Shown here one piece after another: positions 11,350 through 34,403 of a stretch of 64,000 bases of DNA. How positions within the stretch are numbered: position 1 is the stretch's first letter; the number at the start of each line of letters is the position of its first letter. The DNA is from Convolutriloba macropyga (lineage: Eukaryota). A program made the translations under genes and the position numbers. The DNA is taken from contig NC_134481.1 in the NCBI RefSeq assembly GCF_964194025.1, forward strand, positions 46,004,001-46,068,000. The letters run 5' to 3'. The notes beneath the pieces are model-generated. The model was not told the origin of the DNA and made no database searches. It saw only the letters and a program-made list of their open reading frames with translations.

Positions 11350-11514
11350 GGATCTTTTCCGTTTCTGCCCCCCCAGTACGTTATGCTCCCCCCAGTGACA
11401 GAGCACGTGTCATTACATAATAAATCATTATGTAAAAATATTGCACGTGCGTCTGGGGGTTGCAAATAATATGCACCCACTAAGCTGGGGGGGGGGCACA
11501 AACGGAAAAGATCC
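11350..11514. mobile_element. GGATC-family MITE
   Basis: TIR GGATCTTTTCCGTTT / AAACGGAAAAGATCC; 8-bp TSD GGGAAAAT. Confidence 0.85.
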
Positions 11515-11634
11515 GGGAAAATATCTAGATTTTCTAATTCGGAGCGTCAAACGGCTTGGTTGAGTACAATCTTGGCCATTTCTGAGATATTTCAATTTCA
11601 ACTTTTCGAGAAAGGCAGAATTTTTGGCGAAGCA

Positions 11635-11709
11635 ATGTTTTGTATTGTTTGTGGCAAAGACAACGCGAAAGCCTGCGGAGGCTGTAAAACGTCCCACTAC
11701 TGCTCTAAG
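11635..11709 (+). CDS. MYND-finger protein copy 1, exon 1 (MFCIVCGKDNAKACGGCKTSHYCSK)
   Basis: CxxC-x7-CxxC-x4-YCS, the first part of a MYND finger; phase-0 donor AAG|GTCAGA. Confidence 0.85.
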
Positions 11710-12227
11710 GTCAGAATTTTTCAAGATAGCAGGAATTTCGACTGCGGACTTTTGTTTCTGGGTTAAGTTGATGAAAGCGTTTTCTTGATAGAGCTTAGCA
11801 AGTTACTTAAACGATAAATTGAATGTTAAATCCTAGTTTGAATGGTTGGCGTTTTGAAAAAAGCATTCTTCAATTGTTATCCTAACGTTTTCGAAACATG
11901 TTTGCATGTTGGGGGGGGGGGGGGGGGGGTTATAGCAGGCACAACTACTGTAAATGGACCAGTACTGCATTTGAACCAGGGTTTCACTGGCAAGCCTAAC
12001 GTTCAAACCAGTACACTAACTGGTCGTAAGCTCTCGAACTTAGGCATATCTTATAACCCGTTTTCTTGTTCCTCGAGGCTTCAACTCTCTAGCCAAGTGT
12101 ACATTGAACAACTAGAGCGTCTTGTCAAGCTTAATTTATACCCAATTTTCAATAGGTTGTTTCCTCTACTTTGTAAAAGTTACCCCTGCTATACCACATT
12201 TGTGTATACATTTTTTGCTTTGTCAAG

Positions 12228-14006
12228 GCATGTCAAAAGAAAGACTGGAAGCTACACAAATTAGTTTGAATTCCCCAAGTGAAACCGGAGCATCCGGACT
12301 ACCGAAGTTGCGACCCAGTCGTTGAACGTTCACCAGCTTCGCGACTTAAGAAACGAGGCGAAGTCTCAGAAACTTTGATAAATAAATGGTTCCGAAGTAA
12401 CGAAATTATTCCTGATTTTGCTGCCGAGTACAGAAAAGTATACCCGAATGATGTCGATCATTTCATACGTCTAACGGCTGAGCGGATTTCCATTGTTGAA
12501 ACTCTCGGAGTGCTCGAGAGAGGATACGAAGCATTCTCGGACGAAGATTTTTTGCCGGATCTACTTGCAATGCGCTGGAAAACATCGGATCCGCAAAGTT
12601 TGAAAGCGTTCCTAGGACGAAAAAAATTGAAAGACGGCGACATTTTTGACTGCAACGTAGTACCATACTTGAGTGACTGTGCAGGCAATAATGACGTCAT
12701 GGTCAATTACCAGCAGGTCTTCAGAAACACTCCAAGTGTTCCTTTAGGGTATGAATTTGGAAAGACCTACGTGGGGATCGGGTTCGTCGACTTGAGCCAG
12801 CTGCTCTGGGGAGAATACCAGAATGAAGGAGGAACCCTGCGTTTCTATGGTTACGACCAGGCGGAGGTGACAGTTGGGAGGAGTGTGTTGATGTATGAGA
12901 TGATGAAGGCAGAAGAGAGAGAAGTGAGTGAGAAGACGATTCTGCAGGTCTGGTTCTCATCCTGTTGGGACAGAGAGACACAAGAACAGTTCTTCTCATT
13001 TCTGGACAAACATGTACCCAAAATAAACAACCATCTCCTGTCTAAATACGCCCCCATTTGGAAAGCGAAGAAGGGAATGACTGCCAAACAGGCTCAGCAT
13101 GCTTTTCAGGAAAAGATAAGATCTGTGGACTTCGTGACCTTAAGCAACCTGAGAAAGAAGCAAGATCGCGTTGCATACGCTCGCTTCTTGTTTACAGGAT
13201 ACGTCTCATGGGAAGGTCTCGAAGCATTAGACGATTTAGAGGCAGTTTGTGCAAATGTTACTATGTTCCCGGGGCATGACGAAGATTGGTGTAAAGCAAA
13301 GTTTGAAAATTTTTATGCAACTATTGACATGACTAAATTGTCCCCAATGATTCGGGCGTCTGACAGTTCGATCATATCCTTTCTGCTCGGAGCAACTATG
13401 GAAAGATTTAACAGGTTGAGAAACTGGGTTCAAGAAGAGAAAGTTGTTTGCGAGCTTCAGCTTAAAAGTGTCAAGCTAGATGATGCCAAATTTGCCCAAA
13501 TGATCGGACAGCTGAATCCATATTTGATTGACTGGAGCAATATTCCGGACTACTTGCCAAGGTTAGATTTCATTGACTATGCTATGAAATGTAGTGGACC
13601 TGATACAGTGCATAACTTTCACACGATGAACTGGGTTTATTATGTGTTTGGTTCTGTTTATTTGGACTTCATGGGACGACGTGAACTCCTGGAATCAATC
13701 TATCAATCCTACCGTTCTGCTTTACAAGCACGCGCAAAAGCACGAGAGTGGTGCATACCGCATTTTTGCCGACTTGTTCGTCATCCAGCTTTGTCTCTAC
13801 CTTCTAATGAGTTCACGACCATGTCTATTGGGAAATATGGCGACAAATACTTGCGACATTTCTTAACGGACAGAAACGGGAAAGTCGCGAACCACGTGAA
13901 GTCTGTCGAATTGCAACCTCATCAAGTGTTTGCAAATTGCTCGTCTACAATTTTCTGCGCGTTCTCATTCGATGATGAAATTGTTTTCTGCAACTACCGA
14001 ATGTAA
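12228..14006 (+). CDS. MYND-finger protein copy 1, exon 2; in-frame TGA at 12267-12269 (possible pseudogene or recoded codon)
   Basis: Acceptor TGTCAAG; reads ACQKKDWKLHKLV*IPQVKPEH... then an intact ORF paralogous to copies 2 and 3; AATAAA at ~14260. Confidence 0.8.
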
Positions 14007-14344
14007 ATCTTGATCTGAATTTGGATGACTTCAGTAAAGTACAAACTGAGATCTGGAGAGATTTTGCTTGAGCGCCTTGATGACTCATTAAATTCTCTGG
14101 TTCTGAGACTTCTTCAATTTGTTTTTGCTTTTCATTTAGATATGATATTTCGACTATTGATGTTTTTGATGCTGTGTTATTTATGATTTTTGATATTGAG
14201 GTATTAAATGAATTCTGGAAACTTGAAACTTTGTTTGCCCAATGCAGCTTGTGTATTCGAATAAACACATTTTAAATGGGCTTTATCGGCATTCATTTTG
14301 AATTACTTCCTAATTTGATTAGTTACTTCTGGTTTTTGAGCGCG

Positions 14345-16379
14345 TAAAATGTGAATCACGTATTGTGGTCGGCGTTCGTTTCTACGGCCCAAAAGAGAGG
14401 AATGTTGGTTTTATACAGGTTTATTGCAAACCAAAGGTGAGTATTGGTTTTCCATAGGATTTTACAACTCGAAGGGAGTATTCGTGAAGCGTCCTTTTTG
14501 ATCAATAATGTTGATGGGAGTAAGTGTATTTGAAACAGGAAAAAATTTTGCGGAGGGAATTAAATTTTTGATTACGTGCGGTTTTTTAAAGCAGTTTTTA
14601 TTAGTTTTAACTTTTCATCCAAAGTGGTTTTTTCTCAATTGTTTTGAACAGTTTATATACGTTTGGGATCATTCTTGAACATCTGTTACACCAAATGTTA
14701 GACTTTTAGAAGCAGTTTTGAGGTTTTTTGAAACCAATTTGCCGGTTTAGGCGATTTTATTGCAGGTTTTTGTATCATTCTTCAAATTTACATAGGATTT
14801 GGGGTGGTTTGGTTTAAGTTTTTTTTCAAATGGATTGAGTTATTTTTTATTTGATTGATAATAATTTTGAGCTGTTCTTGTTAAAGAAGGTTAAGTCAAA
14901 TTGTCCTAATTTTGTTGCTATTCTTTCCTGTTAATTTTGTTGCTATTTTTTTAAGTTGAAGCATAGCTGTCGATGACTTGAGCATTGAGTTTTCTTCGTA
15001 CGTTGATTTGTTGTCTAACGTTGGGCATTAATGTTGAAAATATTTGATATATTTCTGATGATCAGTTGAGACTACCACTGGTAAGTAATGTTCAAGGTCG
15101 GAAGGTCATATTATGAGAAGTCATGATCTCAAAACAGTCCCTCTTCTCTATATCCAAACTATTCCCCATATCTAGACCTCCCCCTAAGCCGCCGGCGCCA
15201 CCCAACTACCCATCCCACCTACCCTCCAACTACCTCGCCGCCTAAAAATTTTGTCTCAATTTTCAGAAAGACTTTCTTCAGTTTTACTTGGCAATTATTT
15301 TTCACTTTTGTTATTTTTTTCTGATTTATGTAAGGTTAGAATAGTGTTCATATTGTTTTCGATAAAATGTGAATCACGTATTGTGGTCGGCGTTCGTTTC
15401 TACGGCCCAAAAGAGAGGAATGCTGGTTTTATACAGGTTTATTGCAAACCAAAGGTGAGTATTGGTTTTCCATAGGATTTTACAACTCGAAGGGAGTATT
15501 CGTGAAGCGTCCTTTTTGATCAATAATGTTGATGGGAGTAAGTGTATTTGAAACAGGAAAAAATTTTGCGGAGGGAATTAAATTTTTGATTACGTGCGGT
15601 TTTTAAAGCAGTTTTTATTAGTTTTAACTTTTCATCCAAAGTGGTTTTTTCTCAATTGTTTTGAACAGTTTATATACGTTTGGGATCATTCTTGAACATC
15701 TGTTACACCAAATGTTAGACTTTTAGAAGCAGTTTTGAGGTTTTTTGAAACCAATTTGCCGGTTTAGGCGATTTTATTGCACGTTTTTGTATCATTCTTC
15801 AAATTTACATAGGATTTGGGGTGGTTTGGTTTAAGTTTTTTTTCAACTGGATTGAGTTATTTTTTATTCGATTGATAATAATTTTGAGCTGTTCTTGTTA
15901 AAGAAGGTTAAGTCAAATTGTCCTAATTTTGTTGCTATTCTTTCCTGTTAATTTTGTTGCTATTTTTTTAAGTTGAAGCATAGCTGTCGATGACTTGAGC
16001 ATTGAGTTTTCTTCGTACGTTGATTTGTTGTCTAACGTTGGGCATTAATGTTGAAAATATTTGATATTTTTCTGATGATCAGTTGAGACTACCACTGGTA
16101 AGTAATGTTCAAGGTCGGAAGGTCATATTATGAGAAGTCATGATCTCAAAACAGTCCCTCTTCTCTATATCCAAACTATTCCCCATATCTAGACCTCCCC
16201 CTAAGCCGCCGGCGCCACCCAACTACCCATCCCACCTACCCTCCAACTACCTCCCCGCCTAAAAATTTTGTCTCAATTTTCAGAAAGACTTTCTTCAGTT
16301 TTACTTGGCAATTATTTTTCACTTTTGTTATTTTTTTCTGATTTATGTAAGGTTAGAATAGTGTTCATATTGCTTTCGA
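14345..16379 (+). repeat. Tandem duplication of a ~1017-bp unit derived from HINE family A
   Basis: 14345-15362 and 15363-16379 differ at about ten positions; the unit is similar to 41430-41570 (aatttgaattgtattgg..., ttac.actcgaag.g.gtatt); degenerate family-A 3' end near 16395-16430. Confidence 0.85.
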
Positions 16380-17981
16380 TATTTTATTCTTCGAGCTGTT
16401 TCTGGTCTTCTAGCGGGTATGTTTTTTCTGCTACACTTCATGGCAGAAAAACCTAGTGTTAAAATGAGTAATTTTTCTGTTCGCAGTGCTTCTACTGCGT
16501 TTAACAAGCAACTTATACTTGCAGATTAACCGCCATTAGTTTTTTTTACAACATAACGTAGACTTTGTTCTACTATTGGTATGAGATTTGTGTTTGTACA
16601 AAGGGAAACACAATTATAAAATGTTTAAAACGCTTAATTCGCGTTTTTTTTATGTGAAAATTTATTACGATTTTATCTTGTGCTGCATTTAGCACTTTAA
16701 ATCGATGTTTCAATGGGCTGGCAAAATGTTTAAAAATTAATGGAGAAACCTTGAATTTTACATTGTTTTTTATTCATCTGATCAGTTCGGTTACCTGTTT
16801 GAAATAGTGGTCTGGCTGTATTATATCCTCAGTTCACTTTGTTCTTCAAAGTTCTCATCATTTCTTATAGGATAAATCCTATAGTGCCTAATTAGGAGAT
16901 TTTAAGTGATTTAAAAATATGCGTATTTTGTAGCCAATTAGACTTTAAACTTACCATATAATTGGGGTGTCGAGAATGTGATTTGTTTTCACGAGAAATA
17001 TAGGTTTATTTGGAATGTTATGATCGGCTTGTTTGTATAAGCAATTTAAATCAATGGAGTTTTGATCTGCTTTAATTAAGAAAGAAAATCATGTCCGAAA
17101 GAATGCTCATTATTTGTGTTAGTTGTTTTTGGTTCAATATATCTGATTCATTTTTTTCGTCCCGATCTGACGTCACTCTGAAATCAGTTTTTGGTAATTT
17201 TTTCGGGTAATGTTTGACAGTGATGTGCGTAGGGTTTTTTCAACTCCTACGGTCTTAATTCTATGTTACGAGCTTGAATAGTTTCTTAGAATCGCAGATC
17301 GAAACTACCTGTCTACATCGCAAATATCGTCTGGTAATCTTCAATCTATGTTTCCACTTGAAATATGTTAGATTCAACATAGAAATTTTATGGAGTTTTA
17401 AAGAACTTAAAGATAAAGTGATTTTGTGAAATGGTTCATCCCTAGCTTCAATATTTTGATGAAATTTTTTACGATGAGTTTTTAGATTGTCTAGATTTGT
17501 GATAAAATTATACATTTTGATGCGATTGTTTTCTATTGTTATGGAGAGATTAAATGTAATATGGCATTTGGTGCATGAAAAATGTTTATTTTTAGTATAC
17601 TGGTCAAAAGCAGATATGAACTGCTGTGAATTTAGACCAGTTAAGAAACAAATGGAAAAGTTTTTGTTTTTGCAGCTTTTTTTAAAATTATTATTCTGCG
17701 AGTTTCTTGCCATAAATGCCACATGCATGAACAATCCAAAGTCCTTTTTTATATCACCCGACTCATAATAAGCAGAATTGTGCCTTTCTTTGATTGCGTC
17801 TCTGAAAATGGACCAATGCACTTAACTCTATGAATGGCTGGCGTTGTTCAAATTTCAAAGTTTTATTAGTTCATGGTAAAGAATGCTACACCATACTCCT
17901 TCGCAAAATCAGACATTAAAATCACTCTTTTAAAGAACTGCTTGTTCTCACGGTAACAATAAGCTCAGCAATCTTTTCTAG

Positions 17982-18341: not shown

Positions 18342-18559
18342 TTTATTGACTCAATTTTCTAGAAGTTTAATTTCTGCAAAATCCACGAAACTGGTTTCTA
18401 TCCTAAGCAACGAAAACGAGTCAGCTCTTCTTTATAATTAGAAGCTTGATGTTGGTACCTTTTGAAATATCTATATTTGATTATATAGTTCTCAAATTTT
18501 CAGTACGTTTGTTAAGCTGATGTCTGGATAATTAACTCAGTTCAATTTCACCCTTAGCC

Positions 18560-18836
18560 GGGGGCATTTCAGATGGACGACACCAAAATTCTGTATTAAA
18601 TGAACGACAAAAATTAATACACGCAAAATCTCAATATACGCTGATAATTTATTACTAGTTGACGTGCCAGTTGTAATAGATTGGGGCGCGCTCACACGTT
18701 AGGTTGTGATAGATTCTTATCAAGTCCCACGGGCCGCTGAGGAATGGACACATGCGGAAAATGTATTTCTCCTTTTTTTTCGTTTAAACTAGTCATTATG
18801 GATGCTTTGCAGTGTCGTCCATTTGAAACGTTGTCC
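18560..18836. mobile_element. MITE-like element
   Basis: Inverted repeats TTTCAGATGGACGACAC (18567-18583) / GTGTCGTCCATTTGAAA (18812-18828). Confidence 0.6.
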
Positions 18837-19313
18837 TGTTGATCCCCCATTGCCATTATACCCAACTTGCCATTTTACCCAACGTCGTTCTAACCAATGC
18901 TAACTTTACGCAATTGTTAAAATTACCAGAACGACAATTAAATTTTCCGAAGGACTTGATGTGAAACTATCTTTACCAAACATGAGATTAAAATTTCCGT
19001 TTAACTATGTTAAAACATGCTGGTAAAAGCGATCGCTAATCTGTAATAACGTAATTGAACAAAAAGATATGATGGAATTGGATAAATTGTCATGTAAGCT
19101 GTGTGGCTAAATTTGGAAAATGATATCGTTAAAAAGGATTATTTAACATGCTACACTTTTCAGAGCTGCTCAAGAATAATTGAACTGTTTTTAGTTTTCG
19201 GTTAGTAGGTGGTCCGGTTTCATAGATATTGTAGCCATTAAATCTCGAGTGATTGTGATGAGATAAAACGATATCATGATCGGGTTGGAAAATTTTGATC
19301 AGACGACCTTTCG

Positions 19314-19613
19314 AACGACCTTTCAAACGACCTTACAGTCCATAATGTAAAATGGCGAGTTGTACGGTTCAAAAAACGACCTTTCAAACGACCTTACAGT
19401 CCATAATGTAAAATGGCGAGTTGTACGGTTCAAAAAACGACCTTTCAAACGACCTTACAGTCCATAATGTAAAATGGCGAGTTGTACGGTTCAAAAAACG
19501 ACCTTTCAAACGACCTTACAGTCCATAATGTAAAATGGCGAGTTGTACGGTTCAAAAAATGACCTTTCAAACGACCTTACAGTCCATAATGTAAAATGGC
19601 GAGTTGTACGGTT
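19314..19613. repeat. 61-bp minisatellite, about 5 copies
   Basis: Near-perfect copies of AACGACCTTTCAAACGACCTTACAGTCCATAATGTAAAATGGCGAGTTGTACGGTTCAAAA with no spacers. Confidence 0.95.
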
Positions 19614-20409
19614 GCTTTTGTTATTGCGTACAATTCAGGAACTTGTTATCTATTAAACAAATGAAACGTGAGATAACAAATTGCTACTTTTGAATAATTG
19701 TTATTTTTTGTTATTTTATTTTTGTGCGCTTGTTTTCTTAAATCGAACTTGAAGGATTGGAGATCTTAGATATTGAATTTATTCGTTTAAACTAAACTGC
19801 AGTTTAACATGTAAAACGGTGATTTTAAACGTTCTGTTTTTGCTAACGAATGTCGAAAAATTTATTGCTTTAATATGGCCACTTCGTTTTGAGGTGATCC
19901 TTTGCGGGCTTATTAAGACTTTGCTGCCATCATGTTCTCAGACAATAAAAGTTTCCTTTTGACTTTTCACTCAACCAAATTTCATACTGGTGTTTCAAGC
20001 ATAAACGTTTTGTTTCTGGTATAAGTTTACTTTTTGGAGCTTCCATTTATGCTCTCTGAACTTTCTGTCAATTGAGATCTGCTCTGATTGGTTAGTTATG
20101 CATGACGTCATTGTTGTTGTTATTGGCGCCGTCTCTCAGAACAACAATTTTAGTCCCTCGACGTCTGCTTAGCTGTAGGCTTCAAACTATTTCTCAGAAA
20201 TTGAAAGAATTGTTTATCGCAAATATCGTCCTAACGTTATATAGCAAAAATTTGTACATTTGTGCATAATTTCAGCATATCTTATCCACTGAGCATAATA
20301 ACGTGCTCTCGTTTTACCACCAGAAGAGTTTTTTTATTGTGTGAAGCAATTAATAACTTTTGTTATACTGCTGTTTTTGTTATACTGTGGTGTGCGTTTT
20401 AACGAGTTA

Positions 20410-20487
20410 ATGGCTGTTTGTCGAGTGTGTTCTAAACAAGATGCTAAGGCATGTACGGGTTGCAGATCGGTCCATTATTGCTCTAAG
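20410..20487 (+). CDS. MYND-finger protein copy 2, exon 1 (MAVCRVCSKQDAKACTGCRSVHYCSK)
   Basis: Homologous to the copy 1 first exon; same phase-0 donor position AAG|GTTCGT; too short for the ORF track. Confidence 0.85.
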
Positions 20488-20780
20488 GTTCGTTGATATA
20501 ATCCAACTTTCTTTTCTTGAGTAAATATTTCAACTGAGAAATTTGGGTTCAGAGGAAGCTAACGTTAACGATAGGGAAAATGCTTAAACTTATGAAACTT
20601 ATGATTGTTGAAAGATACCATTTTTTAACAAATTTTGTTGATGGTTGTTTTCTGATTTCGGTGCACTGCTTTCTATACTTGAGAAATGAAGGAAATGAAA
20701 TATGAAAAATAAGGTTTGAATTTTACCTTCATGATTGAGAAGCAAATACAGCAAATAATTTGAAACTGAAAAGCTGATCA

Positions 20781-23589
20781 TTTTTGTTCCGACCCCACTT
20801 GTGGGGGGAGGAACTATATACTCACATGGGTTTTTTTTGTTTAGTCAATTTTTGCCGATCGATATATTCATCGTAGAGAATTGTGAGTGGTATCATTAAA
20901 AAGCTCGTCCAGCGTCGAATTCAAAATTAAAAAGATTTTTTTTAATTTCCTTTTTTTCGAGGAGTTATCGAGGATTGAAGTTTTGTGTGAACATGTGATA
21001 TTTTGTTCACTTTTAGTGTAATTTATGTGTAATTTTAATTCTTCAAATTTAGATAATTTTTAAATAAAAGCTTGATTCAAAATTACATTTCAAGCCACAA
21101 AAAGATTCAATATAGAGTTCCTAATAGACGAAAGGCGATAAAAAAGACTTTTTCTGGTCTCATAGGGAAGTTCACTATCAAAAAAAATTATCGAATTCTA
21201 TTTGAGAGCTTTTTTTTTGAAAAAAAAATCATTTTTATTCGTTTTCTTGTGTCAGATAGAGACTAGTCACTTTTCATTCCAAGGTTCCGTTAATGATAAA
21301 TCTGATTCACAGTCTAATGACGCCCAATGAATAAAAAATTCGTTTTTAAAGAATCGCTCGTATATTTTTTTTGGCTACGACTCTGAATTTTAAATGAAAT
21401 TTTGATTTTTTTTGAGGTTTAACTGAATTTTTGGAGTCCTATGGCATAAACTCGTTGCCTAAAAGTGCAGTAGGTTTCATGATGAGCATTAAGAGAACCT
21501 ATCTAGAGCTTTGAGTGGACAGGAGAAAATTTTTATCATTAACCATCATAAACTTTTCGTGAATTGTAGGTCAACTTCAGTAATGACACAACCACCTTAC
21601 TTTCTACTGCAACCAAAATTAATCTGGTTAGCGGTTTTATTTTGTTATTATTTGTTATCTGACTTCAATGATACAAAATTTCGAAACTTAAAAAAAATTC
21701 GGATTTTTTCGTTTTATTGGTCCCTCTTGAAATCTTAACAAATTCTCCTGATATTAATATCTCCCATTGGCTTTGAGAATTTTTTCAATGGATCTTGGAC
21801 AGAGTTTTCAGAGAAAAATTTATGGTTTAAATGGCTTCGACACTTTCTTCGCGCACTTTCCCACAATTTTTTTCTTTTCGCCGGTATTTGATGTTGTTTC
21901 CATTGTCATAAGACTTATTGTGATGTCTTATCGATTACATATGCATGAAAATTACCGTTTTTTGTCCAATCGACGCACAACTGAGCGTATTTATTGCCTT
22001 CCGTTGAAAGCTATTGGATTTAATGATGATTAAACTTTAAAAAAGGTTTTCCGAGAAATTTTTAACATTAAACAATCTTAGCCCTTAGTTCGTGAACTGT
22101 AAGTCAGTCTCAGTAATGACCGGACCTTTTTTTGTTATTCAACCAAAATAATATAGTCAGCGGTTTTATGTTCTAACTATTCGTGTTATGACTTCGATGC
22201 ACAAGTTTTCATAACTTTTTTAAAAATTTTTGATCTCTTTTTCTTAATTCTGGTTCCTTTTGGAATCTTAACACATTACCCTAATAATGATAGTTTCATG
22301 GGCTTGGAGATTACAACGTTTAATGGATCATACAAAAAGTTTTCAGAGAAAAGCTGATGGTTTAAAGGGCTTTTTAAAGGGAAAAATTTTAACTGAAAAG
22401 TTCATTTTTTAATGGCCTCGACACTTTCCTCGCTCATTATTTTTTTTAATTTGCTGCTATGTTAGCCTGTTTTTTATTCTTTAGGTAGCCGTTAAAGCTG
22501 ACCGGTCTCATAAGTTTTTAAGTGAGGATTGATTGAATAATGTTACCCGAAGGAGACTGTTTATAGCCATTAGTCTTCAAGTTTTTAATATTATACATTT
22601 TTGAGATTTTAAGGAATTTTTATTTTTTTTAGTTTTTGTTGTTGTTTTTATTTACTGGTAACGTGTTCTCATCATTGAGAGGTCCCATGTATTTTAAAAA
22701 TTCACAGGTTTACTGATATTATGAGGTAGCTAATGATTTGTTTGTTGGAGCATGTGTTTTCATAAAAAGTTATGTGAGTGGTGTATTTGTGATTCTTTTT
22801 CTCTTCCTTTAGCACAATCGCGTAATAACAGATCCCAATGATTTTCAAATGTGGCCGAATTAAACTTATTTATTCATTCATTATATATTTAGCTGAACTG
22901 AATTAGTATAAATGGAAATTGAAATAAAAATACATAATATTCAGATAATAGCTAATGATTTTAATGGCTTCACTGATTTGTGTTTTCGCATTGTTTTTAA
23001 TTTTTCTGCATCTATAGTCGGTTCCTATGGCTTAGTCTAACCAAACACAGGTGCTATTGGTTTCATTATGACTCTTTTGAAAATTTATTGAGAATTATTT
23101 CGTTGAAAGCTATTGATTTTTGAGACTTAAAATTTTTCGGTTTAAAAAATGTGGATTGATTTTTGAATTTCGCCTAATTTTTTTTTGTAGAAATGTTACC
23201 TAGTCTCTTTAAGATAAAATCCTGCCTGCTGTGTAGTTAGGAAAATTAAATTCATGTAGTTAGGTTTTTGTCTAATTATAATGTGACGTTGTTACTAGGT
23301 GCTTTTGAAATTAGTTATTGCATTTTTGACGTGAAACTTATTTATCTGCTTTTTTGTAGTTGTTGTTTTTTTCTCGTAGTCTTTTCAATGCAGATATCGT
23401 TGTAATGAGGCATGGCATCATTTAATTCAATTATGAGTTTGGTTGTGTAACGGTTTTTTTGAACTCAAACATCTACTTTTGATTATCGCGTTGTCAAAAA
23501 TGTAAGTCAAAAGACAGTTAATTCAAAAATGTAGATCAGCGCGGGTCGGAACATCATGTGCGAACGCACATCAACGAGGCGCCTTGTTA
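20781..23589 (+). mobile_element. HINE/Helentron-like family B element filling the copy 2 intron
   Basis: 5' subTIR TGTTCCGACCC with adjacent partial inverted copy (GGAAC); 3' subTIR GGGTCGGAACA (23543-23553) followed by hairpins ATGTGCG-aa-CGCACAT and AACGAGG-cg-CCTTGTT; internal ~530-bp duplication (21560/22092). Confidence 0.7.
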
Positions 23590-23939
23590 TAATATCTATT
23601 TAAAAGTTTTTAGCTATCTTTGCTCAATTAATTTCAGCATATTTTCCATAATTCTTGTGATAAGGGTACGTGCTAGCGGTTAACAAATTGTGGCAACAAA
23701 TATCTTTCATGAGCATGCTTAAACAATCTAATGCTTTGTTTTTTTGATAATATTTTCCATCGCTTGATATTAGGTAAAACTATAGATTACAATCTTTATA
23801 TACCATTATAAACGCGCAAAATGTCAATAGCACAAACCGTTCATAATTTATCGTTGGAGGATATCCACCTGTGATGACAGTAAAAAATATTCTAAAATCG
23901 GGCTAGTTTGAGCAGTTGAGTGTGATGTCTTGTAATTAG

Positions 23940-25733
23940 GAGTGTCAAAAACGGGACTGGAATGAACACAAAAAGTCTTGTAACAAAACAACTCAAGTTG
24001 TGAAACCTAAGAACGAAGCGGCTAAACCCTCTGCTAAGAATAGCCCAAATGACATCGTGAAAGTACCCAAAAGACTGAATCCTTCTGATTATCTCATCAT
24101 CATGGAGCGAAACAAGTCCATGATAACTGATTACGCCATGGAGTACAGGAAAAGGTTCCCGAATGAATTTAACCGGGTTGCAACTTTGGCAATGGAGCGT
24201 ATGCAGACGCTTGTAACAATGGCCTCCATTGAGGAGGGTTTTGAGGCGTTTGCTGACGAGGACTTTGCTCCCGAAAGGTTTATGCAGCGTTGGAACACTT
24301 CAGACATTGAAGGTCTTACGGCATTTCTTAAGAGACCTGATTTGAAAGATGGTGATATCTGGAGCTACGATACGTTGCCTTACTTGACTAGCAACCTTGT
24401 TCAGTCGAGAAGTCAACAAATTGTGAGGAACACAATTAACCATCAGCAAATATTACGTAACACTCCTTGTCCTCAATTAATTTTCGATTTTGGAAAGACC
24501 TACGTGGGAATCGGATATGTAGATCTGTGTCAACTGCTCTGGGGCGAATACCAAAATGAAGGTGGAGGAACCCTGCGTTTCTATGGTTACGACCAGGCAG
24601 AAGTGACAGTTGGGAGGAGTGTGTTGATGTATGAGATGATGAAGGCAGAAGAGAGAGAAGTGAGTGAGAAGACGATTCTGCAGGTCTGGTTCTCATCCTG
24701 TTGGGACAGAGAGACACAAGAACAGTTCTTCTCATTTCTGGACAAACATGTACCCAAAATAAACAACCATCTCCTGTCTAAATACGCCCCCATTTGGAAA
24801 GCGAAGAAGGGAATGACTGCCAGACAGGCTCAGGATGCATTCACAAAACATCGCAGGTCCTGTGATTTTATGCCCATCAATAATCTCTTGGCTGTAGACG
24901 ATCAAATTCATTTTGCAAATTACCTATTCACTGGAGCTTTGTTCATGGACAAAAACCGCCCTATTGATTCTCTATGTGCGAATGTAACTATGTTTCCTGG
25001 TTCTTCGGAAGATTGGATTAAAGTTAAGTTCGAAGACTTCTTCAATACAATTGATATGAACACTCTATGTCAACAATTTGGACCATCGAGCAGATCGGTG
25101 ATTGAATTGATTTTGAAATCGACAGAGAGCAAGTTGAAAAAACTGAGGAGTTTTGTAAGAGAAGGCAAAATGCTTTGCAAGTTAAATGTCAAACAGGTCG
25201 CGACCGACGATTCTAAGTTTGCGAAAGAAGTTAGGAGCTTAGATCCTTATTTTATAGACTGGAGCAACATTCCGGACTATTATTCGAGGCTGGACTTCAT
25301 CGAATTGGCGCGAAAATGCAGCGGTCCAGACACTCTCCATCATTTTCATACCATGAACTGGGTCTACAAAGTTTTCGGAGCTTCGTTCTACGATTTCGTC
25401 GATCGCCGTGAGGTGATTGAAAGCATTTACAAGAAGCACAAGAAAGTTATGGAACCGGTAAACCAGATGTTACGAATGACGTCGCCTGATTTAACAAGAT
25501 TGGTCCGAGTTCCAAAGCTGAACCTCCCTGTCAATGAGTTCTCAGCTTTGGCAGTTCAAATTCATGGCGAAAAGTATCTCAAGCATATTATGACTGATAA
25601 AAAGGGGAAAGTCTTGAACTTTGTCAAAACTCCATTCAATCACTACTGGCAAATATTTGGAGACAATGACACGCTTATGATATGTGCCTTCTCTTTTAAC
25701 GATGAGTTGGAGTTGGGTCTGAAATATGTTTAA
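23940..25733 (+). CDS. MYND-finger protein copy 2, exon 2; spliced protein 623 aa
   Basis: Acceptor TAATTAG; ECQKRDWNEHKKSC completes the finger; long ORF with YVGIGYVDL, QVWFSSCW, IDWSNIPDY, HTMNW; AATAAA at ~26010. Confidence 0.9.
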   Translation, partial: ECQKRDWNEHKKSCNKTTQVVKPKNEAAKPSAKNSPNDIVKVPKRLNPSDYLIIMERNKSMITDYAMEYRKRFPNEFNRVATLAMERMQTLVTMASIEEGFEAFADEDFAPERFMQRWNTSDIEGLTAFLKRPDLKDGDIWSYDTLPYLTSNLVQSRSQQIVRNTINHQQILRNTPCPQLIFDFGKTYVGIGYVDLCQLLWGEYQNEGGGTLRFYGYDQAEVTVGRSVLMYEMMKAEEREVSEKTILQVWFSSCWDRETQEQFFSFLDKHVPKINNHLLSKYAPIWKAKKGMTARQAQDAFTKHRRSCDFMPINNLLAVDDQIHFANYLFTGALFMDKNRPIDSLCANVTMFPGSSEDWIKVKFEDFFNTIDMNTLCQQFGPSSRSVIELILKSTESKLKKLRSFVREGKMLCKLNVKQVATDDSKFAKEVRSLDPYFIDWSNIPDYYSRLDFIELARKCSGPDTLHHFHTMNWVYKVFGASFYDFVDRREVIESIYKKHKKVMEPVNQMLRMTSPDLTRLVRVPKLNLPVNEFSALAVQIHGEKYLKHIMTDKKGKVLNFVKTPFNHYWQIFGDNDTLMICAFSFNDELELGLKYV

Positions 25734-26043
25734 TTCACCTGAAAGATCAATCAGCAGACTGAACTGGACATTAAGTTATGGCGAACTACTCTTATAGACT
25801 CTCAAAGACCTTGTTGTTTTACCTGATTTATATTGCTGTTTATTTCCTTTCAGATCATGTATAGCGAGCTCCTGGTTTCTTCAGTTCACTATCAATTTTT
25901 AGGCATTTTGTATTGGTGAAATTGCAGTATCAGTTGATAGAACAGGAACTGATTGAGATTTTGGTATTTCTTTTCATGCTTTCCTCGTTTTATTCAAGCT
26001 CTATTGAACAATAAAGCCTCAAACGCCGTCGTGATATTATTAA

Positions 26044-26437
26044 TTGCTCCTGAACAAGTTCAGCAATTATTGTAAACGTGTGTCTTCTTTTTATACAAAA
26101 TTTTCGCTTGACCGTTTTGACTTTTCGAGTAACTTTTACGCCCTTTGACTTTTTGCGTTTCGCGTGATCTAAAATTCTCTCTCAATCACAATTTCAAGCA
26201 GCTGAACTCAATTGGCGGCAAAGGTCAAATGGAAAGTGCGTCCAAACTGGTGCCGTTTTTAACTTTAAATCTGAATAGTGGTATATGTTAACCTGTAATG
26301 TGCTTATTTGAAGCCCAATATTGAACTTCTTAGTCTCGTTTAGACTCCCTCTCCCCCCGACTGAAGCAGGCTGCAGTTGATTAGAGCTCCCACTAGTGCT
26401 CCCACCAGAGCAACTCCGACGATTAGTCGGTTATGTT
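26044..26437 (+). mobile_element. HINE-like family C copy
   Basis: 5' TTGCTCCTGAAC-aa-GTTCAGCAATT; 3' AGAGCAA then hairpin CCGAC-gatta-GTCGG then TTATGTT. Confidence 0.65.
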
Positions 26438-28099
26438 AAACGTTGATTTTGAGGTACGCCATGTACTAGCTGGAATACAGACTGATGAATATCGGTCGGA
26501 ACGTGCGAGTTAACATTAAAAGCTTTTTTAATCTCTTAAGAATTTTTTAGAGTAAGAGCCAATCAAGATAATCAAAGTAGTTTGAATTCTAATTTAAAAA
26601 CTTTCCTCCCTTACAGAATTTGTTTTTCATAAAATACTGTGCTCTTAGCATGTGGGTATTTTGTTTTGCTGTGTTGACTTTACTATAATGGAAACTGACA
26701 TGACATGGAGTTAGCTAATTTATCGGACGATAAAATTGGCTGCCGACAAAAGTGGCCTGATAGTATGTAAAAACTGAAGGCGCAATAATTATAACATTTT
26801 TGAAAATGACCATTTAATTTTTTTTTACCGAAAATGAATTCTGCATGGATCCTATTCAAAGCCTTATTTGCCGCCCAGTCTTAGGATCCGTGGCCATTTC
26901 TGATAGTTTCTTGCGTTGGTGATATTAAATATTAGTTTTCTTAACAAATTTTTGGTTGATAAAGTTTCTAAGAAAAGCAATTGTGCCGTTTGTCATCTAA
27001 ATTTTGTAATCGTTTTAATTTGCCTTCTGCTTGGGCTTCAAAATCAATCAGCTTTGATTGTACTTATCGTCAGATAGACAATAAAGGTTTAGCAAGATAG
27101 TCGGAGATTAAAAGATAATTGTTTTTGGTCAAAATAAAACTAGGAGGATTGATAATGTGGAATATTTGCAGCACTTAAATGGGCATTATATTCCTGCCGC
27201 CGGTCCTTTTCAAAGGAGCAGAGACTTCAAACTTCATTCAATAAATAATTCATTAATGAGCCTAATGCCGTGGATATAATGACGCAGAACATTCGCTTTC
27301 TTGCCTAAATTTCAAAAAAGGCAGTCAACACTGAAGTTGTGGAAGTGAAGAAAATCAGGGGAAAAATGCCGATTTTCTCCTGAAAACTGAAGTGAGATGT
27401 TGTGATTACACTGGATCAAAAGCAAAAATACATTTTTTTAAAACAGTTAAATACAGTTTAAAACTGAGCTAAATGGATGTCTCCGAACGAGGGTTTCAAA
27501 ATAGTTTCACGAAATTTGAATAAGATCCCGAAACTGCTTTATTGACTAAGGTTGTTTTAGGTGCTAAGCATTACAGCAAAAAATCGAAACTGCATCCAGT
27601 TTAATTAATTTGAATCTTAAAACGAAATAAATTGAGAAAAAAAAATAACGACGAATAAGGAAAAATTAATTTTTTCATTACATTTTAAATTCAAGAAGTT
27701 ATATCAAAAATGCATTATCTGGCTAGCAGAGCGCTCAATTTGCTGAAAAAGGAAAATGTTAATGCAAGTTTCTGACTCTCTGTCGGAAACGTTGTGATCA
27801 TTAGAAATTTTGTTACTTAGATTCACCAAAAATCAACGTACCCTTAACGAATTTTCAAAAAGTGCCTTGAATATCTGAAACATTTTGAATTCAAATCAGG
27901 TCTCAAGTTAGAATGCATTATGCCTGCAGTTTTTTTGACAATTAGTAGAGGGTTCGTATAGTTGTCACAAATTTTGCTAATGAAGTCTGCAATAATTTCG
28001 TTGCAAAATTCTGACACCTAATTTTTCTGAAAAACTCTCTTTTTAGCCTTTAATTTTTCAGTTACTTTAAAATCTGGATTAAAGATGAACCATTCCAGT

Positions 28100-28299
28100 N
28101 NNNNNNNNNNNNNNNNNNNNNNNNNNNNNNNNNNNNNNNNNNNNNNNNNNNNNNNNNNNNNNNNNNNNNNNNNNNNNNNNNNNNNNNNNNNNNNNNNNNN
28201 NNNNNNNNNNNNNNNNNNNNNNNNNNNNNNNNNNNNNNNNNNNNNNNNNNNNNNNNNNNNNNNNNNNNNNNNNNNNNNNNNNNNNNNNNNNNNNNNNNN
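28100..28299. other. Assembly gap (200 N)
   Basis: Run of N. Confidence 1.
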
Positions 28300-31200
28300 C
28301 CTGTCGGTTAATGGGAACGCAGAGACAAATCTTGTAATCGAATAGTTAAATTAGAAATAATGGTTGACAACTGTGGCGATTGACACGAAATTCAGTCCAT
28401 ATTTATTACCCCAAATTACCGCACTTTTACATTCATGGTGATCACCTTTAATTTATCACTTCCTTGACTTCTTATGACATCCGATCTTAACTAGCTATTT
28501 ACTCTGATAATTTACTTCTCTAAAAGATCAAGGGTCATCATATCACACATAACAATATGAAAAGTTGGGGACAAATCCAGTATAAATAGCACGTGTTAGC
28601 TCCTTGTTGCATTCACTCATTTCATAAATAACCAAGATGTAAATCAGCACGTGGATGAGGTACGTATATCTTTCCATACTTTAAACAATTAACATTATAC
28701 TTTCAACAAAATGTATACGCTTAAGATGTATGTTTTTGTTCCATGGATTTACGTATCTATTTTCATTTCTGTTTGCAACTTCACCTCTGACTGCTTCATC
28801 GATCATAACAGAATGTCTTTTCTGTAACATTTCCGTTACTTGTCTCAATCTTGCTATTCGTAAAAACCTGGTAGTGAATATGGCTATCCATGGTCTACCT
28901 TTTATCCTTCTAAACATTTGTATCTAATTTTTTCGAATACTTCTGCTAAAAGATATTGCCTTATTTAGAGTACTTTTATGTATATTTACCTACCCTTGTG
29001 AAATCGTTCGGTGCTATATTAAACGAATAGCATGTCATGTGTCTTCTTTTTAATGTTTGAGTTTCTTGACTTAAACATGATATTTGTGTAAACCTGGAAG
29101 CGAATGTTTATCCAGGGTCTAGGTTTTGAAATTTCCTTCTAAACATTAATGTTTTGGAATACCTCTGCTAAAAGGTTATTGTCTTATTCAAAGTATTTTA
29201 ATGTATGCTTTCTTAATCTGGTGAAATTTTTCGCTGCTATTTTATAAGCATCTTCTGATATGTATTCTTGTTTAAGATTTCAATGGAATGCTCCAATTGG
29301 AGTTAATTTTTTCCTTGGTCCTTTTACCAATTATCCTCTTTGCTTTCCTATATTCTTTTTGACAGCGGTGCTGCGTTCTAAATTGTCTTGTTTTATGTAT
29401 TGGTGACAAACAACATCATAGTAAGTGAGTGGACCTAAGAATCTAAGTATGTCATTTTTTAAACAAACTTCTGAAAAGATTTCCGTAGTTCCTGTTACTG
29501 TTTTATTTTGTTTCAGCTAGTTAATGAATAGGTTGAAGTCATAATTTTACCCATTTTAGACGTATAATAGTGCAAATGTTGGTTTCTTTGCGTTCAAATT
29601 TCGTTTAGTATGCTAATAACCTCTAATATTTACTATTGAGATGAGATTGATGTCTTATATATTTAGTGTTTATTGGTTTGTTACAGTAAATACCTAACAT
29701 AATAACTCAACTTCCCCTTTAATCGCTAAGTTTAATGAAAATTATTCGCTTTGTTGAAATGAAATTTCCGTTCCTGTTTCTGACCTCCTCATTTTTATGA
29801 TTCCGTTATGATTCCGTTTCCGCTTCATGGTTCTAACTTACATTCTCATGATTCCCTAATATTTGTTCTGAGGAGTATCTTAATAAGTAATGAAGACTGA
29901 TATGATTTGTTATGTGACCTTTAAAATAGTTAACATATTAGTGCAATATTCGAATTGACCTTAATCTGGCATTAAATTACTTAATCAGGCATTTGATTGA
30001 ATGTATTTGAGTGATTTTGATAGTGTTTCTATTTTTCATTTTTCAAAATGCTGAAATCTGTTTTGATCCTCTTAGATAGCTTTCATTTTTGTTGAGTGCA
30101 TGGGAAATTAGATTTAGGAAATAAAATCTTAACATCATCAAAATATTTTGGCTTTCTTTGTTTTTTTTTCAGGTTGTAGGGAACATGTAAGCTGACAACC
30201 TCTATATTAAACAAAAATTATCAATGTTTAATATAACCGGTTTCTACGTTTTTAAATAAAATATATAGAAATTTGAATTTTAGTTCTATAAGAGATCCAC
30301 GAACTGAGCTGTAGTTTGCAAGGTGAAGTGTTCTTGTTGGTCTTTTTCGAATCATCCTTTCACGTTCTCTCATCTTATTGCTCAGACAATTTACTTCTTG
30401 TTGACCAGCTTGACTGCAAACACTAGGTTTTGTTGGTTGTATCTGCATAGATAAAATCTGTTTCTTGTGTTGTACTTCTTCGGGAAAGGGAAAAGTTTTT
30501 TTTATAGGTTCGTTAAGTGTTAATTCAAATGTGTCAGCCTATTAATCTTCTTGTTTTAATTTGGTCCTTATTGATATTTTTGCGTTGTTAAAACTTGATA
30601 CTGTGATAGATATCGCTTAAGTTTGTTCATCTGAGTCATCTTTGAACTTGCTTTTGAATTATGAATTTTAGTTGTATAATGTTCTTTTTTTAAGACTTTG
30701 AGTTTTCCCAAAGTCTTGGTCTCAAGTATCACCATTGTTTTGCAATCTACCCTTTTTAAATTTTTATGATGTGCATATTAATCTTTATTATTAATAAGAA
30801 TTACTCTTCAACTCTCACTCAAATAAAAATTAGAACAACTCTTTTACCTAATCTTATCTTTAAGTGTAATTAATCTCTAACTTTAAGACTCTACTTAATC
30901 TTTCACTTTAAAAACAAGTTTCTCTTTACTTTAAAATAATTTGGTAAAAAGTAGCTACACAGTAAAGTTAATCTTAACTATTCTTTCTAGTTTATGGACT
31001 TTAAATTATTTTGTTGAATTAGAAAGAAAACTTAAAGTTACTCTCTAACTCATTGCAAAAGTAAAGTTCTTCGTTATAATTTGTCTGTGAAGCACACTGA
31101 TATATTAAATTTTTTTAATTTAGTTTTTAATGTATAATCTGTTACGCGTACATATAAAATAAATTTTATTAATCTAGAAGGCAATTTTTTTAATTCTCAT

Positions 31201-32594
31201 TTAAATTGTAGAAACGAAGATGTCCTAAATTGTTGAAACGAAGATGTCTTAAATAAAGTTAATCTTTTGCAAATAAGTATAATTAATCGTCATCTCTTAA
31301 GTTAATTGTGTAATTATTCGGTAATTATTTTACTCTCTTCATATAAATTATTTTGTTGAATTTCATTAAAGAAAATTTTATTTTATACTTATTATTCAGA
31401 TTATTTTCTTTAAATTTTTATAGCCTTCTTAGGTATTTTGAAAACGAAAGTTGAAAATCTTACACTATTTAGACCTTTTATTATTAAAAGGAAAATTGGA
31501 AATAAGCTATTGTTGACTTTTTTTAGTTGATGATCAGGAGTAATAGTGAGTAGAGGAATTGAGCAAAGCAAGCTGAGCTCGTTTCCTGTTTTTACAGCTA
31601 CTCCCAAAAAGTTTAACCTTGTTCGATTATTAAAAAGTTAATGTAAGGCCAGGACATTATTTCTTTGAATCTGATTAGTTCAGAAATATGGACAGGAATG
31701 CAACAGGAATAATTAATAGTTCTGCTCTCTCTCACTCGCTAATAGGAGCTATGAAAAGTGAAAAATTTCTACATGTCCAACTCGTGGAATACGTAAACTA
31801 GCAGCTGAAACTGCTGGAAATGATAGCAAAAGTTGAAGTTGTTCAGCGTTTTTCCGATTTTCGTGAATATGCTGTAACAGCTAGCTATCTCTGCGGGATA
31901 TTGAAGACAGCAACTATTGACAAGCAGTTTCTTCCTAAGAAACTATACAATAACTATTATAAAATTGTGGTTGAAATAGGAAATTGCCATTTTGAACATT
32001 TACGTTCAAATTTTTTGGAAACACATTTGAGCGTGCGTTATTGATATTCGAAGATTTTTTTTCCTTAGCGCAACAAATTGTTTACGTGACTTAAAACTTT
32101 GTTAAACAGCAAATTCATTTGTTACAATAAATGCGGAGTTGTTGTTGAGTAAATGTAGTCAAACAAAGAATTAATTTTAGTCATATAGAAGGAGAATCAA
32201 GAATAGCGACTTTGGAAACTAGCCAAATAATACAAAGGCGGTTGCAATCGTCGAATTTCTCTTATTGTTGGAGCAATAGATAAGAAAAAGCTGTCCTCAG
32301 TCTGACACGATTCTACAACAGCACACGTCTCAAGTTCCTCTTTGAAACTTATTTGTATTTCATTTTAAAAAAACTAGAGAAAATGTTTTTAATGAAACAG
32401 TCTTGTTGATCTAAACGAAAAATTGCCAGGAGAAGGAAATCGTGTATGTAAAAGTCCAAAAAGGTATAGCCGTTTTGATTTCAAAAATTAACAAGACAAA
32501 CTAATTCTCGTTTCTGTGCCATTTATTTTATTGGGGCTTCTAATTTCAAGTTTAATTATTGCTAGTCGAGGTCAAGTTTTATGGTTTTAAATAG

Positions 32595-34403
32595 GAGTGT
32601 CAGCGGAAAGACTGGAAAGAGCACAAGAAATTGTGTGGCAAAACTGTTTCCACACCTGTGAAAACAAAGGAACTCACACGTAAAGCTGCTACGAGTAATG
32701 CTGATAAAACCTCTCTCCCTAAAAAGGTGAAGAAATCCGACACGAGAGGCATTCTTGAGCGCAACCAATCGCTGATAGCCGATTACGCAACCGAGTACAA
32801 AAGTAAGTTCCCAAGAGAAAGAGGTCATGTTGAAAGATTGGCGGTAGAGCGCACACAAGCGCTGGTCCGCTTGGCTGCCATCGAAGAGGGTTTCGAAGCT
32901 TATACCGACGATGATTTTACTCCTGAATTTGGGGTTTTTATGAAGCGCTGGAACACAGTCGAGCTTGAAAGCTTGCAAGCGTTTCTGCGACGTCCCGACA
33001 AGAAAGATGGTGATATCTGGGATTTTGATTCAATGTCTTATTCATCTGCTTATATACTGGAGCAAGAATTCAAAGTAAATTATCAACAGATTTTGCGTAA
33101 CACTCCTTGTTCCGAAAAATTGTTTCATTTTGGAAGTAACTATATTGGCATTGGGTATGTGGATTTATGCCAACTGCTCTGGGGCGTATACCATAATGAA
33201 AGTGGAGGAACTCTGCGTTTCTATGGTTACGATCAGGCAGAAGTGACAGTTGGGAGGAGTGTGTTGATGTATGAGATGATGAAGGCAGAAGAGAGAGAAG
33301 TGAGTGAGAAGACGATTCTGCAGGTCTGGTTCTCATCCTGTTGGGACAGAGAGACACAAGAACAGTTCTTCTCATTTCTGGACAAACAGGTACCCAGAAT
33401 AAACAACCATCTCCTGTCTAAATATGCTCCCATTTGGAAAGCGAAGAAGGGAATGACTGTCAAACAGGCTCAGGATGCTTTTACTGCGCATTTGAGATCA
33501 TGCGATTTCATGCCCCTTAATAATCTACTTGTCGCGAACGATCGCATTATGTTTGCAAAATATTTGTTCACTGGTTGTGTTTTCGTTGACTTCAATCGAC
33601 CTGATGACGTTATATGTGGAAACGTTACTATGTTCCCGGGAGCCTCGGAGAGCTGGGTCAAAGTTAGACGCGAAGATTTCTTTAACACCGTTGATATGAG
33701 TGCGATTCTTCGTAGCTCTGGTTCGGAAAATAACGAGTGTAAATCTGTGATCTCAAAAATCCTGAATATAACTACATCTAAGCTGAAAATTTTCAGGTCT
33801 TTGGTACAGGACAAGAAAATTGTTTGTAAATTTGCTCTGAAAGAAGTTCGAACGGACGATTCGACATTTGCTAGAGATATGAAAAGGTTGGATCCCCATT
33901 TCATAGACTGGAGCAACATTCCGGACTATTATTCCAGGTTGGAATTCATTGAACTGGCACGAAAATGCAGTGGTCCGGATACCCAGCATAGTTTTCATAC
34001 AATGAATTGGGTCTGCAAAGTTTACGGTGCTTCGTTTTTCGATTTTATTGATCGACGCGAGTTGCTTGAAGACATGTACAGTCGTTTCAGACTGTCGGCT
34101 CGATTTTTAAGTCAATTCAGTCAAGCTATGTCATCGCAAAGTTTAGAGGGTCTAGTCAGGAGCCCCAAATTTGATCTCCCCCTCAATGAATTTTCATCTA
34201 TGGCAATTGAGCTACACGGAGACAATTATCTCAAGCATCTAATGACTGACAAAAAGGGGAAAGTTCTGAACTTCGTCAGAAATTCATTCAATCACTACTG
34301 GCAAATCTTTGGAGATAATGACACTGTGATGTCAGTAACATTCTCTTTTAATGATGAGATAATGTTGAGGTTGGCAGACTTTGCCAAGTTAAAGTTGTGG
34401 TGA
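32595..34403 (+). CDS. MYND-finger protein copy 3, exon 2 (first exon not found)
   Basis: Acceptor AAATAG; ECQRKDWKEHKKLC; intact ORF paralogous to copies 1 and 2. Confidence 0.88.
   Translation, partial: ECQRKDWKEHKKLCGKTVSTPVKTKELTRKAATSNADKTSLPKKVKKSDTRGILERNQSLIADYATEYKSKFPRERGHVERLAVERTQALVRLAAIEEGFEAYTDDDFTPEFGVFMKRWNTVELESLQAFLRRPDKKDGDIWDFDSMSYSSAYILEQEFKVNYQQILRNTPCSEKLFHFGSNYIGIGYVDLCQLLWGVYHNESGGTLRFYGYDQAEVTVGRSVLMYEMMKAEEREVSEKTILQVWFSSCWDRETQEQFFSFLDKQVPRINNHLLSKYAPIWKAKKGMTVKQAQDAFTAHLRSCDFMPLNNLLVANDRIMFAKYLFTGCVFVDFNRPDDVICGNVTMFPGASESWVKVRREDFFNTVDMSAILRSSGSENNECKSVISKILNITTSKLKIFRSLVQDKKIVCKFALKEVRTDDSTFARDMKRLDPHFIDWSNIPDYYSRLEFIELARKCSGPDTQHSFHTMNWVCKVYGASFFDFIDRRELLEDMYSRFRLSARFLSQFSQAMSSQSLEGLVRSPKFDLPLNEFSSMAIELHGDNYLKHLMTDKKGKVLNFVRNSFNHYWQIFGDNDTVMSVTFSFNDEIMLRLADFAKLKLW

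Follow-up and report, generated by a model that had tools for sequence, protein, structure and literature searches.

The stretch of DNA analysed here, 64,000 nucleotides of the acoel Convolutriloba macropyga (NC_134481.1, forward-strand positions 46,004,001 to 46,068,000; hereafter the window, in whose own numbering features are located), was placed on contig C15 of the C. macropyga assembly. It contains a tandem cluster of three paralogous genes, copies 1 to 3, each with a long open frame on the + strand (12279-14006, 24000-25733 and 32631-34403, respectively). The encoded proteins are 54% identical between copies 1 and 2, 52% between copies 1 and 3, and 63% between copies 2 and 3. Copy 2 corresponds to an annotated gene: its two exons translate exactly into RefSeq XP_075262157.1 (623 residues, “uncharacterized protein LOC142353711”, Convolutriloba macropyga). 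As described below, the three genes are divergent members of a known, functionally unexplored domain family, and their products join a MYND finger to a domain predicted to adopt the class I (Rossmann) fold of methyltransferases that depend on S-adenosylmethionine (SAM). An earlier reading of the letters alone (the original prediction) had inferred as much, and accurately so. What is new here is a tract of gene conversion, a recent nonsense allele, the status of the first exon of copy 3, and the wider size of the family together with its domain fusions.

The gene plan is best seen in copies 1 and 2. A short exon 1, with ...HYCSK as its last residues and GT next to it, supplies the opening half of the MYND finger; a long exon 2 starts directly after AG with xCQ(K/R)(K/R)DW..H...C and encodes the second half of the finger, a helical region and a class I methyltransferase-fold domain of ~450 residues. 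The finger is divided between YCSK and xCQ by a phase-0 GT..AG intron in both copies. An acceptor at this position is also found in copy 3 (32595), in the unlinked paralogues on C9 and C1135 and in one homologue of Symsagittifera roscoffensis, and the RefSeq proteins of the C9, C1135 and Symsagittifera genes have a complete finger across the junction.

All exons of the cluster lie on the + strand. In copy 1, exon 1 (11635..11709, 25 codons) and a GT..AG intron of 518 nt (11710..12227) are followed by exon 2 (12228..14006), with the second MYND half, the helical N-domain and the methyltransferase-fold domain; codon 14 of this exon is an in-frame TGA (12267..12269), which stands where the finger should have its last zinc-ligand Cys, and the 578 codons beyond it are open. 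In copy 2, exon 1 (20410..20487, 26 codons, residues 1-26 of XP_075262157.1) is separated by a phase-0 intron of 3452 nt (20488..23939) from exon 2 (23940..25733, 597 codons and a stop), where the methyltransferase-fold domain begins at ~24354. Copy 2 is intact. Its RefSeq protein matches zf-MYND (PF01753) over residues 4-40 (E 6e-10, 39.4 bits vs a cut-off of 22.7 bits), and the ligand pattern (C4-C2HC) is complete; in copy 1 the codon of the last Cys is the TGA, and in copy 3 only the second half of the finger can be read.

Copy 3 is represented by exon 2 (32595..34403, 602 codons and a stop, with the AG acceptor before it), which holds the second MYND half and the full domain. A search of the read letters 25734-32594 for its exon 1 came back empty, both with regular expressions and with a permissive tblastn whose queries did recover exon 1 of copies 1 and 2, and the RefSeq model of this copy begins at an internal Met, at 32940. 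An assembly gap (a run of N, 28100..28299) lies between copy 2 and exon 2 of copy 3, 2.4 kb past the copy 2 stop (25733) and 4.3 kb before the copy 3 exon; no family frame abuts it, and the missing exon could be hidden there. The original prediction of three ~620-residue paralogs with a MYND finger split by a phase-0 intron therefore stands as to the three paralogues and the split in copies 1 and 2, but not as to copy 3, where only the second half of the finger is present, nor as to copy 1, which as it stands encodes no ~620-residue protein because of the TGA.

The conserved motifs reported earlier for the large domain (NxQQ(I/V)xRNTP, Y(V/I)GIG(F/Y)VDL, FYGYDQ, QVWFSSCW, NVTMFPG, IDWSNIPDY and HTMNW) are all present in the translations. 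Pfam returned nothing in the three large exons, and a sequence-profile search of the PDB gave a single chance-level match (E 0.62). An AlphaFold2 model of full-length copy 2, computed from a 23-row alignment, has a predicted local distance difference test score (pLDDT) of 83 and a predicted template modelling score (pTM) of 0.82, with low values only in the finger and the linker; for the domain alone (residues 165-623, 119-row alignment), pLDDT is 94.4 and pTM 0.93. When the model was compared with 48,161 PDB representatives in an unbiased VIA-align search, all of the top 50 matches were class I SAM-dependent methyltransferases, with Z 8.5-10.3 where the stated background at rank 50 is Z 4-5, and 100 chains had Z of at least 8. 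A Foldseek search of the PDB returned at E < 0.001 only the two chains of 6ulo, an uncharacterised Leptospira protein, with class I methyltransferases next in rank. In the model, the chain runs from strand 1 through a loop and a helix to strand 2, then through a further helix and ~150 inserted helical residues to strands 4-7, an order that matches the plan published for DNAAF3 (PMC10835030). Together, these results predict for the domain the seven-stranded alpha/beta fold of class I (Rossmann) SAM methyltransferases, interrupted behind strand 2 by a large insertion of helices, in keeping with the Rossmann methyltransferase-like fold first proposed for it.

Membership of the SMYD lysine methyltransferases, which combine SET and MYND, was rejected: the fold is Rossmann, and Pfam finds no SET domain in any copy, as the original prediction had maintained, or in 74 relatives. 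The window proteins do share with SMYD proteins the pairing of a MYND finger and a methyltransferase-type catalytic domain, but the catalytic fold is SET in the one and class I Rossmann in the other, and the resemblance is one of analogy, not homology.

We then asked where the family belongs. A fold search of the ESM Atlas placed first a fungal cluster of “MYND-type domain-containing protein” (zf-MYND in 84%, DUF4470 in 59%), with template modelling (TM) scores of 0.64/0.64 over 482 residues, corresponding to model residues 76-615. Next in rank were DUF4470-only proteins (TM 0.57/0.68), DNAAF3 (0.47/0.49) and bacterial DUF3419 proteins (0.35/0.72). A language-model (feature) search also favours MYND+DUF4470 (0.97, 232/256 features). 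At the level of sequence, a word-based protein search recovered only 20 relatives, while a HMMER profile search recovered 1123 representatives at E <= 1e-3, 364 of them at <= 1e-30. Among 74 diverse relatives examined with Pfam, zf-MYND is found in 28 and TPR in several. DUF4470 is matched in 15 of the 74 at E <= 0.1 (best E 9e-6), at levels from sub-threshold to marginal; those inspected singly cover the region from strand 1 to strand 2 and score 13-20 bits against a 25-bit cut-off (13.4 bits for the close relative P0009). DUF4471 and DUF3419 (PF11899) have no Pfam match in the window copies or the 74 relatives. The resemblance to DUF4470/DNAAF3 and DUF3419 proteins suggested at the outset is thus borne out by the Atlas ranking, the feature search and the DUF4470 matches among the relatives. 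The fold, feature, profile and weak DUF4470 matches taken together indicate that the window proteins form a divergent sister branch of DUF4470, outside the reach of the Pfam model, and are not DNAAF3. We hold the fold and this family placement, taken jointly, with high confidence.

The family is large and eukaryotic, and its closest named relatives are the fungal MYND+DUF4470 proteins (PF01753 + PF14737). MYND+DUF4470 proteins are numerous in fungi. Their modules are arranged as in the window proteins, with an N-terminal MYND finger, a helical region and a Rossmann-like domain; the shared fold is read from Atlas models. The two groups differ in that the window proteins have no DUF4470 match and in that the acoel genes have the finger-splitting intron. 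Among the distant relatives, one JGI metagenome protein, P0113 (1898 residues), joins a cellular RNA-dependent RNA polymerase (PF05183), TPR, MYND and the methyltransferase-fold domain, a fusion suggesting that in some eukaryote the family may be connected with RNA silencing.

A further comparison is with the dynein axonemal assembly factor DNAAF3, also known as PF22 (DUF4470 + DUF4471). DNAAF3/PF22 is reported to be a relative of Rossmann-fold SAM methyltransferases whose Gly loop varies among orthologues, its fold plan includes a large helical insertion after strand 2, and the argument that it binds SAM rests on two features, a loop that contains Gly and an acidic residue where strand 2 ends (PMC10835030). 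The window domain resembles it in its predicted class I Rossmann fold, in the helical subdomain that follows strand 2, in the variability of the Gly loop and in the acidic residue closing strand 2. The window proteins differ in lacking DUF4471, and DNAAF3 lacks the MYND finger. Long held to be an assembly factor with no known activity (PMC8565470), DNAAF3 was later connected to protein methylation, as a pf22 null loses Lys/Arg methylation of the dynein heavy chain (PMC10835030). In the literature, DNAAF3 was the only member of the superfamily for which we came across functional work. Orthology of the window genes to DNAAF3 was rejected: DUF4471 is missing, comparisons by hidden Markov model (HMM) and profile were not significant, and C. 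macropyga has its own, separate DNAAF3 orthologue at C2:80084120, a 439-residue frame 70% identical to the Symsagittifera “dynein axonemal assembly factor 3-like” protein.

More distant likenesses are structural. The best solved structure is 6ulo (Z 10.3, 227 residues aligned, root-mean-square deviation 4.2, Foldseek E 2e-5), and models of DUF3419 proteins (PF11899; BtaA-like, SAM-using) match the window fold with TM 0.72 when normalised by the match, a likeness of structure only. Unlike the window proteins, 6ulo and the DUF3419 proteins are bacterial and of ~270-310 residues, with neither a MYND finger nor the N-terminal helical region, and there is no match at the level of sequence.

We next mapped conservation on the model, with counts taken from an alignment of the 74 diverse family members. 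The loop after strand 1 has the form small-x-Gly, with Ala, Ser or Gly at position 216 in 60 of 74 and G218 in 69 of 74. In the window proteins it reads G216-I-G218 (within G-I-G-Y-V-D) and is not a canonical GxGxG; the DNAAF3 loop varies similarly. The end of strand 2 (position 244) is acidic in 73 of 74, being Asp in 40 and Glu in 33, and in the copy 2 model D244 ends the strand formed by residues 238-244. The acidic second strand pointed out earlier is conserved across the family, and the glycine-rich strand in the degenerate form small-x-Gly. Asp221 is present in all 74, S278, W467 and H493 are likewise invariant, and N469, D472, Y473, N499 and W500 are near-invariant. We read these residues, as positioned in the model, as marking a ligand cleft, with SAM as the putative ligand.

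The same part of the domain stands out at the nucleotide level. Identity between the copies is ~40-65% over most of exon 2 and rises to 97-100% over ~85 codons. Within this core, 220 nt are identical in copy 1 (12867..13086, +) and copy 2 (24603..24822, +), and copy 3 (33234..33482, +) has identical runs of 146-155 nt with copies 1 or 2, and is ~97% identical over 228 nt. Copies 1 and 2 likewise share this 220-nt run without a difference in a related assembly, L020 (ENA ERZ25071359, ctg36763_54x_l; loci 9450-11731 and 18404-20932). Between the window copies, the proportion of synonymous differences (pS) amounts to 0.04-0.13 for the core, against 0.72-0.91 for the flanks on either side. Core pS is higher when other copies are compared (0.33-0.37 for the unlinked C9 copy, 0.65-0.69 for C1135 and 0.83-0.85 for the Symsagittifera-type homologue), and therefore constraint at the level of codons does not explain the identity of the core. 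The tract encodes strand 2 with Asp244, the next helix, the ILQVWFSSCW motif and the helices with which the insertion opens; nowhere is the family more conserved, and the DUF4470 matches fall on this same part. These patterns of nucleotide identity indicate that gene conversion among the tandem copies keeps ~220-255 nt of the putative cofactor-binding core identical. A 101-codon antisense frame (33070-33375, -) overlaps the conversion core of copy 3 and is most likely a chance frame.

What might these proteins do? The reading we favour, and consider reasonably probable, is that they are SAM-dependent methyltransferases whose MYND finger, or TPR repeats in some relatives, brings in a protein substrate or partner. 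SAM would be bound by the domain at two places, the small-x-Gly loop that follows strand 1 and the Asp/Glu that ends strand 2; the MYND finger, or the TPR repeats of the longer relatives, would recruit a protein; and the recruited protein would then be methylated. By analogy, such a design may be regarded as a class I counterpart of SET+MYND (SMYD). Several points weigh against this reading. The three window proteins have no match to DUF4470 (PF14737) at E <= 1, the gathering cut-off being 25 bits. Compared by hhalign with 16 aligned DNAAF3 rows, the family is collinear, yet the match lacks significance (E 0.27), and HMM cross-searches of the window family and DNAAF3 are empty. The Gly loop is degenerate, with one near-invariant Gly only. 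The evidence on DNAAF3 is itself structural and genetic, not enzymological. Finally, the structural matches contain as many small-molecule as protein methyltransferases, so that it is only the MYND and TPR modules that point to a protein substrate.

The degenerate loop, in which G218 alone is near-invariant across the family, would also fit a fold kept only as a platform, the proteins acting as MYND adaptors or co-chaperones that neither bind SAM nor catalyse a reaction. Such a pseudoenzyme or scaffold would fit the distance in sequence from proven enzymes (there is no PDB match by sequence, and Z is ~9-10 rather than > 15), and it has a precedent in the long-standing view of DNAAF3 as an assembly factor with no known activity (PMC8565470). 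Yet the polar residues of the cleft are invariant (D221, S278, W467, N469, D472, H493 and N499), which is more typical of a ligand site, and the DNAAF3 loop varies even more although methylation depends on DNAAF3. We regard a scaffold role as unlikely.

Less likely again is that the proteins are SAM enzymes with a small molecule or a lipid as substrate, or ones that hand on some group different from methyl, in the manner of the bacterial and algal DUF3419/BtaA-type proteins. The best solved match, 6ulo, is an uncharacterised bacterial protein, the models of bacterial DUF3419 proteins cover the Rossmann core well, and many of the top structural matches are small-molecule or lipid methyltransferases. 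Set against this, the domain is fused to protein-interaction modules (MYND in 28/74, TPR in several), DUF3419 is not matched at the level of sequence, and a link to protein methylation exists for DNAAF3, the closest family for which functional data are available.

The family has expanded in acoels, as had been supposed. C. macropyga has at least six full-length copies: the three in the window, a twin of copy 1 on C15, and one each on C9 (XP_075253587.1, 622 residues) and C1135 (XP_075263919.1, 603 residues). Fragments occur on C9 and C1842; these partial copies (C9:47475404-47476295, C9:47503039-47503746 and C1842:16235-16927), one of which has a TAG inside its frame, probably represent paralogues that are broken or have several exons. 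Several copies are also present in Symsagittifera roscoffensis, where at least two homologues are annotated (XP_063723210.1 and XP_063717255.1). A FastTree tree built from 119 domains groups all 13 acoel-type sequences together (support 92), nested in a 45-row clade of mostly ~600-residue MYND-first proteins, while a 74-row clade has most of the long TPR forms. The rows outside acoels are metagenome or assembly proteins, and for this reason neither a donor nor a sister taxon can be named.

The original prediction had also raised the possibility of a patchy distribution or of horizontal acquisition; in the latter, the family would have reached the acoel lineage from a fungal or protist source and expanded there afterwards. 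Beyond acoels, relatives with names are indeed exclusively fungal (Atlas clusters), and word-based searches gave named animal proteins only from Convolutriloba and Symsagittifera, a second such search with a broad alignment bringing no further named proteins. We nevertheless consider such a transfer very unlikely. The MYND intron lies at one phase-0 position in all copies checked and in Symsagittifera, that is, in two acoel genera; the copies occupy at least three chromosomes or contigs; exon GC content (0.40-0.44) matches that of the neighbouring exon of the gene for the bifunctional Glu/Pro-tRNA synthetase (EPRS); the paralogues are 40-60% diverged; and the tree sisters of the acoel clade are metagenomic sequences that indicate no donor. 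A recent transfer in particular is argued against by the intron common to these genes, by their dispersal over several chromosomes and by the unremarkable composition of the exons.

The TGA of copy 1 was examined by comparison with L020, in which the syntenic locus has the same order of genes (EPRS, tubulin, copy 1, copy 2) and is mostly 94-98% identical in nucleotides to the window, falling to ~85% in intergenic blocks. At the TGA codon, where copy 1 reads HKLV* and other copies HKKSC and HKKLC, the L020 copy has TGC and an intact finger. Over the 578 codons past the stop, copy 1 and its L020 orthologue differ by a synonymous rate (dS) of 0.056, with a nonsynonymous to synonymous ratio (dN/dS) of 0.23; dN/dS is 0.29 for copy 2 and its own L020 orthologue. 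Because the syntenic relative has TGC and dN/dS is 0.23, comparison of the sequences indicates that the TGA is a recent single-base TGC-to-TGA nonsense change in a gene that had been constrained until then. An alternative acceptor that would skip the TGA was sought by eye and rejected, the two nearby AGs giving reads that are out of frame or run into a stop. That the codon is instead recoded, as selenocysteine or by read-through, with a full-length protein still made, is highly improbable: the TGA does fall exactly at a Cys position, is present in both copy 1 and its 99.8% twin 31.4 kb upstream and is followed by open codons under purifying selection, but no selenocysteine insertion sequence (SECIS) element was found in the window at the Rfam gathering score or in the 3 kb downstream at E <= 10, the plain TGC of a close relative means that one recent point change suffices, and NCBI has no protein record for copy 1, unlike copies 2 and 3, each of which has one.

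The genes upstream of the cluster, EPRS and tubulin, are animal genes. The EPRS frame (1103-5758) comprises a GST-like region, GluRS, three WHEP domains and ProRS, and appears to be intronless, as it runs unbroken over 1551 codons. The twin of copy 1 belongs to a larger duplicate: window positions 2396-16381, which include part of EPRS, the tubulin gene and copy 1, recur 31.4 kb upstream (G000:C15:45975001-45988974) over at least 14 kb at 99.8% identity; either the segment was duplicated very recently or the assembly contains a haplotype that was left uncollapsed. Immediately past copy 1 on its downstream side, positions 14345-16381 form a repeat with a period of ~1 kb, the segments of which are 99% identical to each other and to the upstream duplicate. 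Another tandem repeat (19314-19613; 61-nt unit, 4.9 copies, 99% matches) is located ~0.8 kb upstream of exon 1 of copy 2. Downstream of the cluster lie a 449-residue frame with no Pfam match (38808-40157) and a 415-residue frame with an RMKL-like/UPF0020 methyltransferase domain (44690-45937; E 1e-29); by tblastn, neither is related to the MYND methyltransferase-fold family.

Taken as a whole, the results lead us to a broader proposal, which we put forward tentatively, as possible rather than probable: that a eukaryote-wide branch missed by Pfam (more than 1,100 representatives at 50% identity, some of them fused to TPR or to an RNA-dependent RNA polymerase) consists of MYND-guided class I protein methyltransferases, sister to DUF4470/DNAAF3 and a Rossmann counterpart of SMYD, which expanded in acoels and whose core is held in concert there by gene conversion. 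For the organism, the cluster is a small and clear case in which concerted evolution is limited to a putative functional core, and annotation of the C. macropyga genome can profit from knowing the recent nonsense allele, which sits in a gene that otherwise evolves under purifying selection. For the family, the DUF4470 superfamily has a large divergent sister branch in acoels and other eukaryotes. Since DNAAF3 was proposed in 2024 to be a methyltransferase, the whole superfamily becomes a set of candidate protein-modifying enzymes. The acoel proteins, with their confident models and conserved cleft residues, may offer a tractable entry to SAM binding and to MYND-directed choice of substrate.

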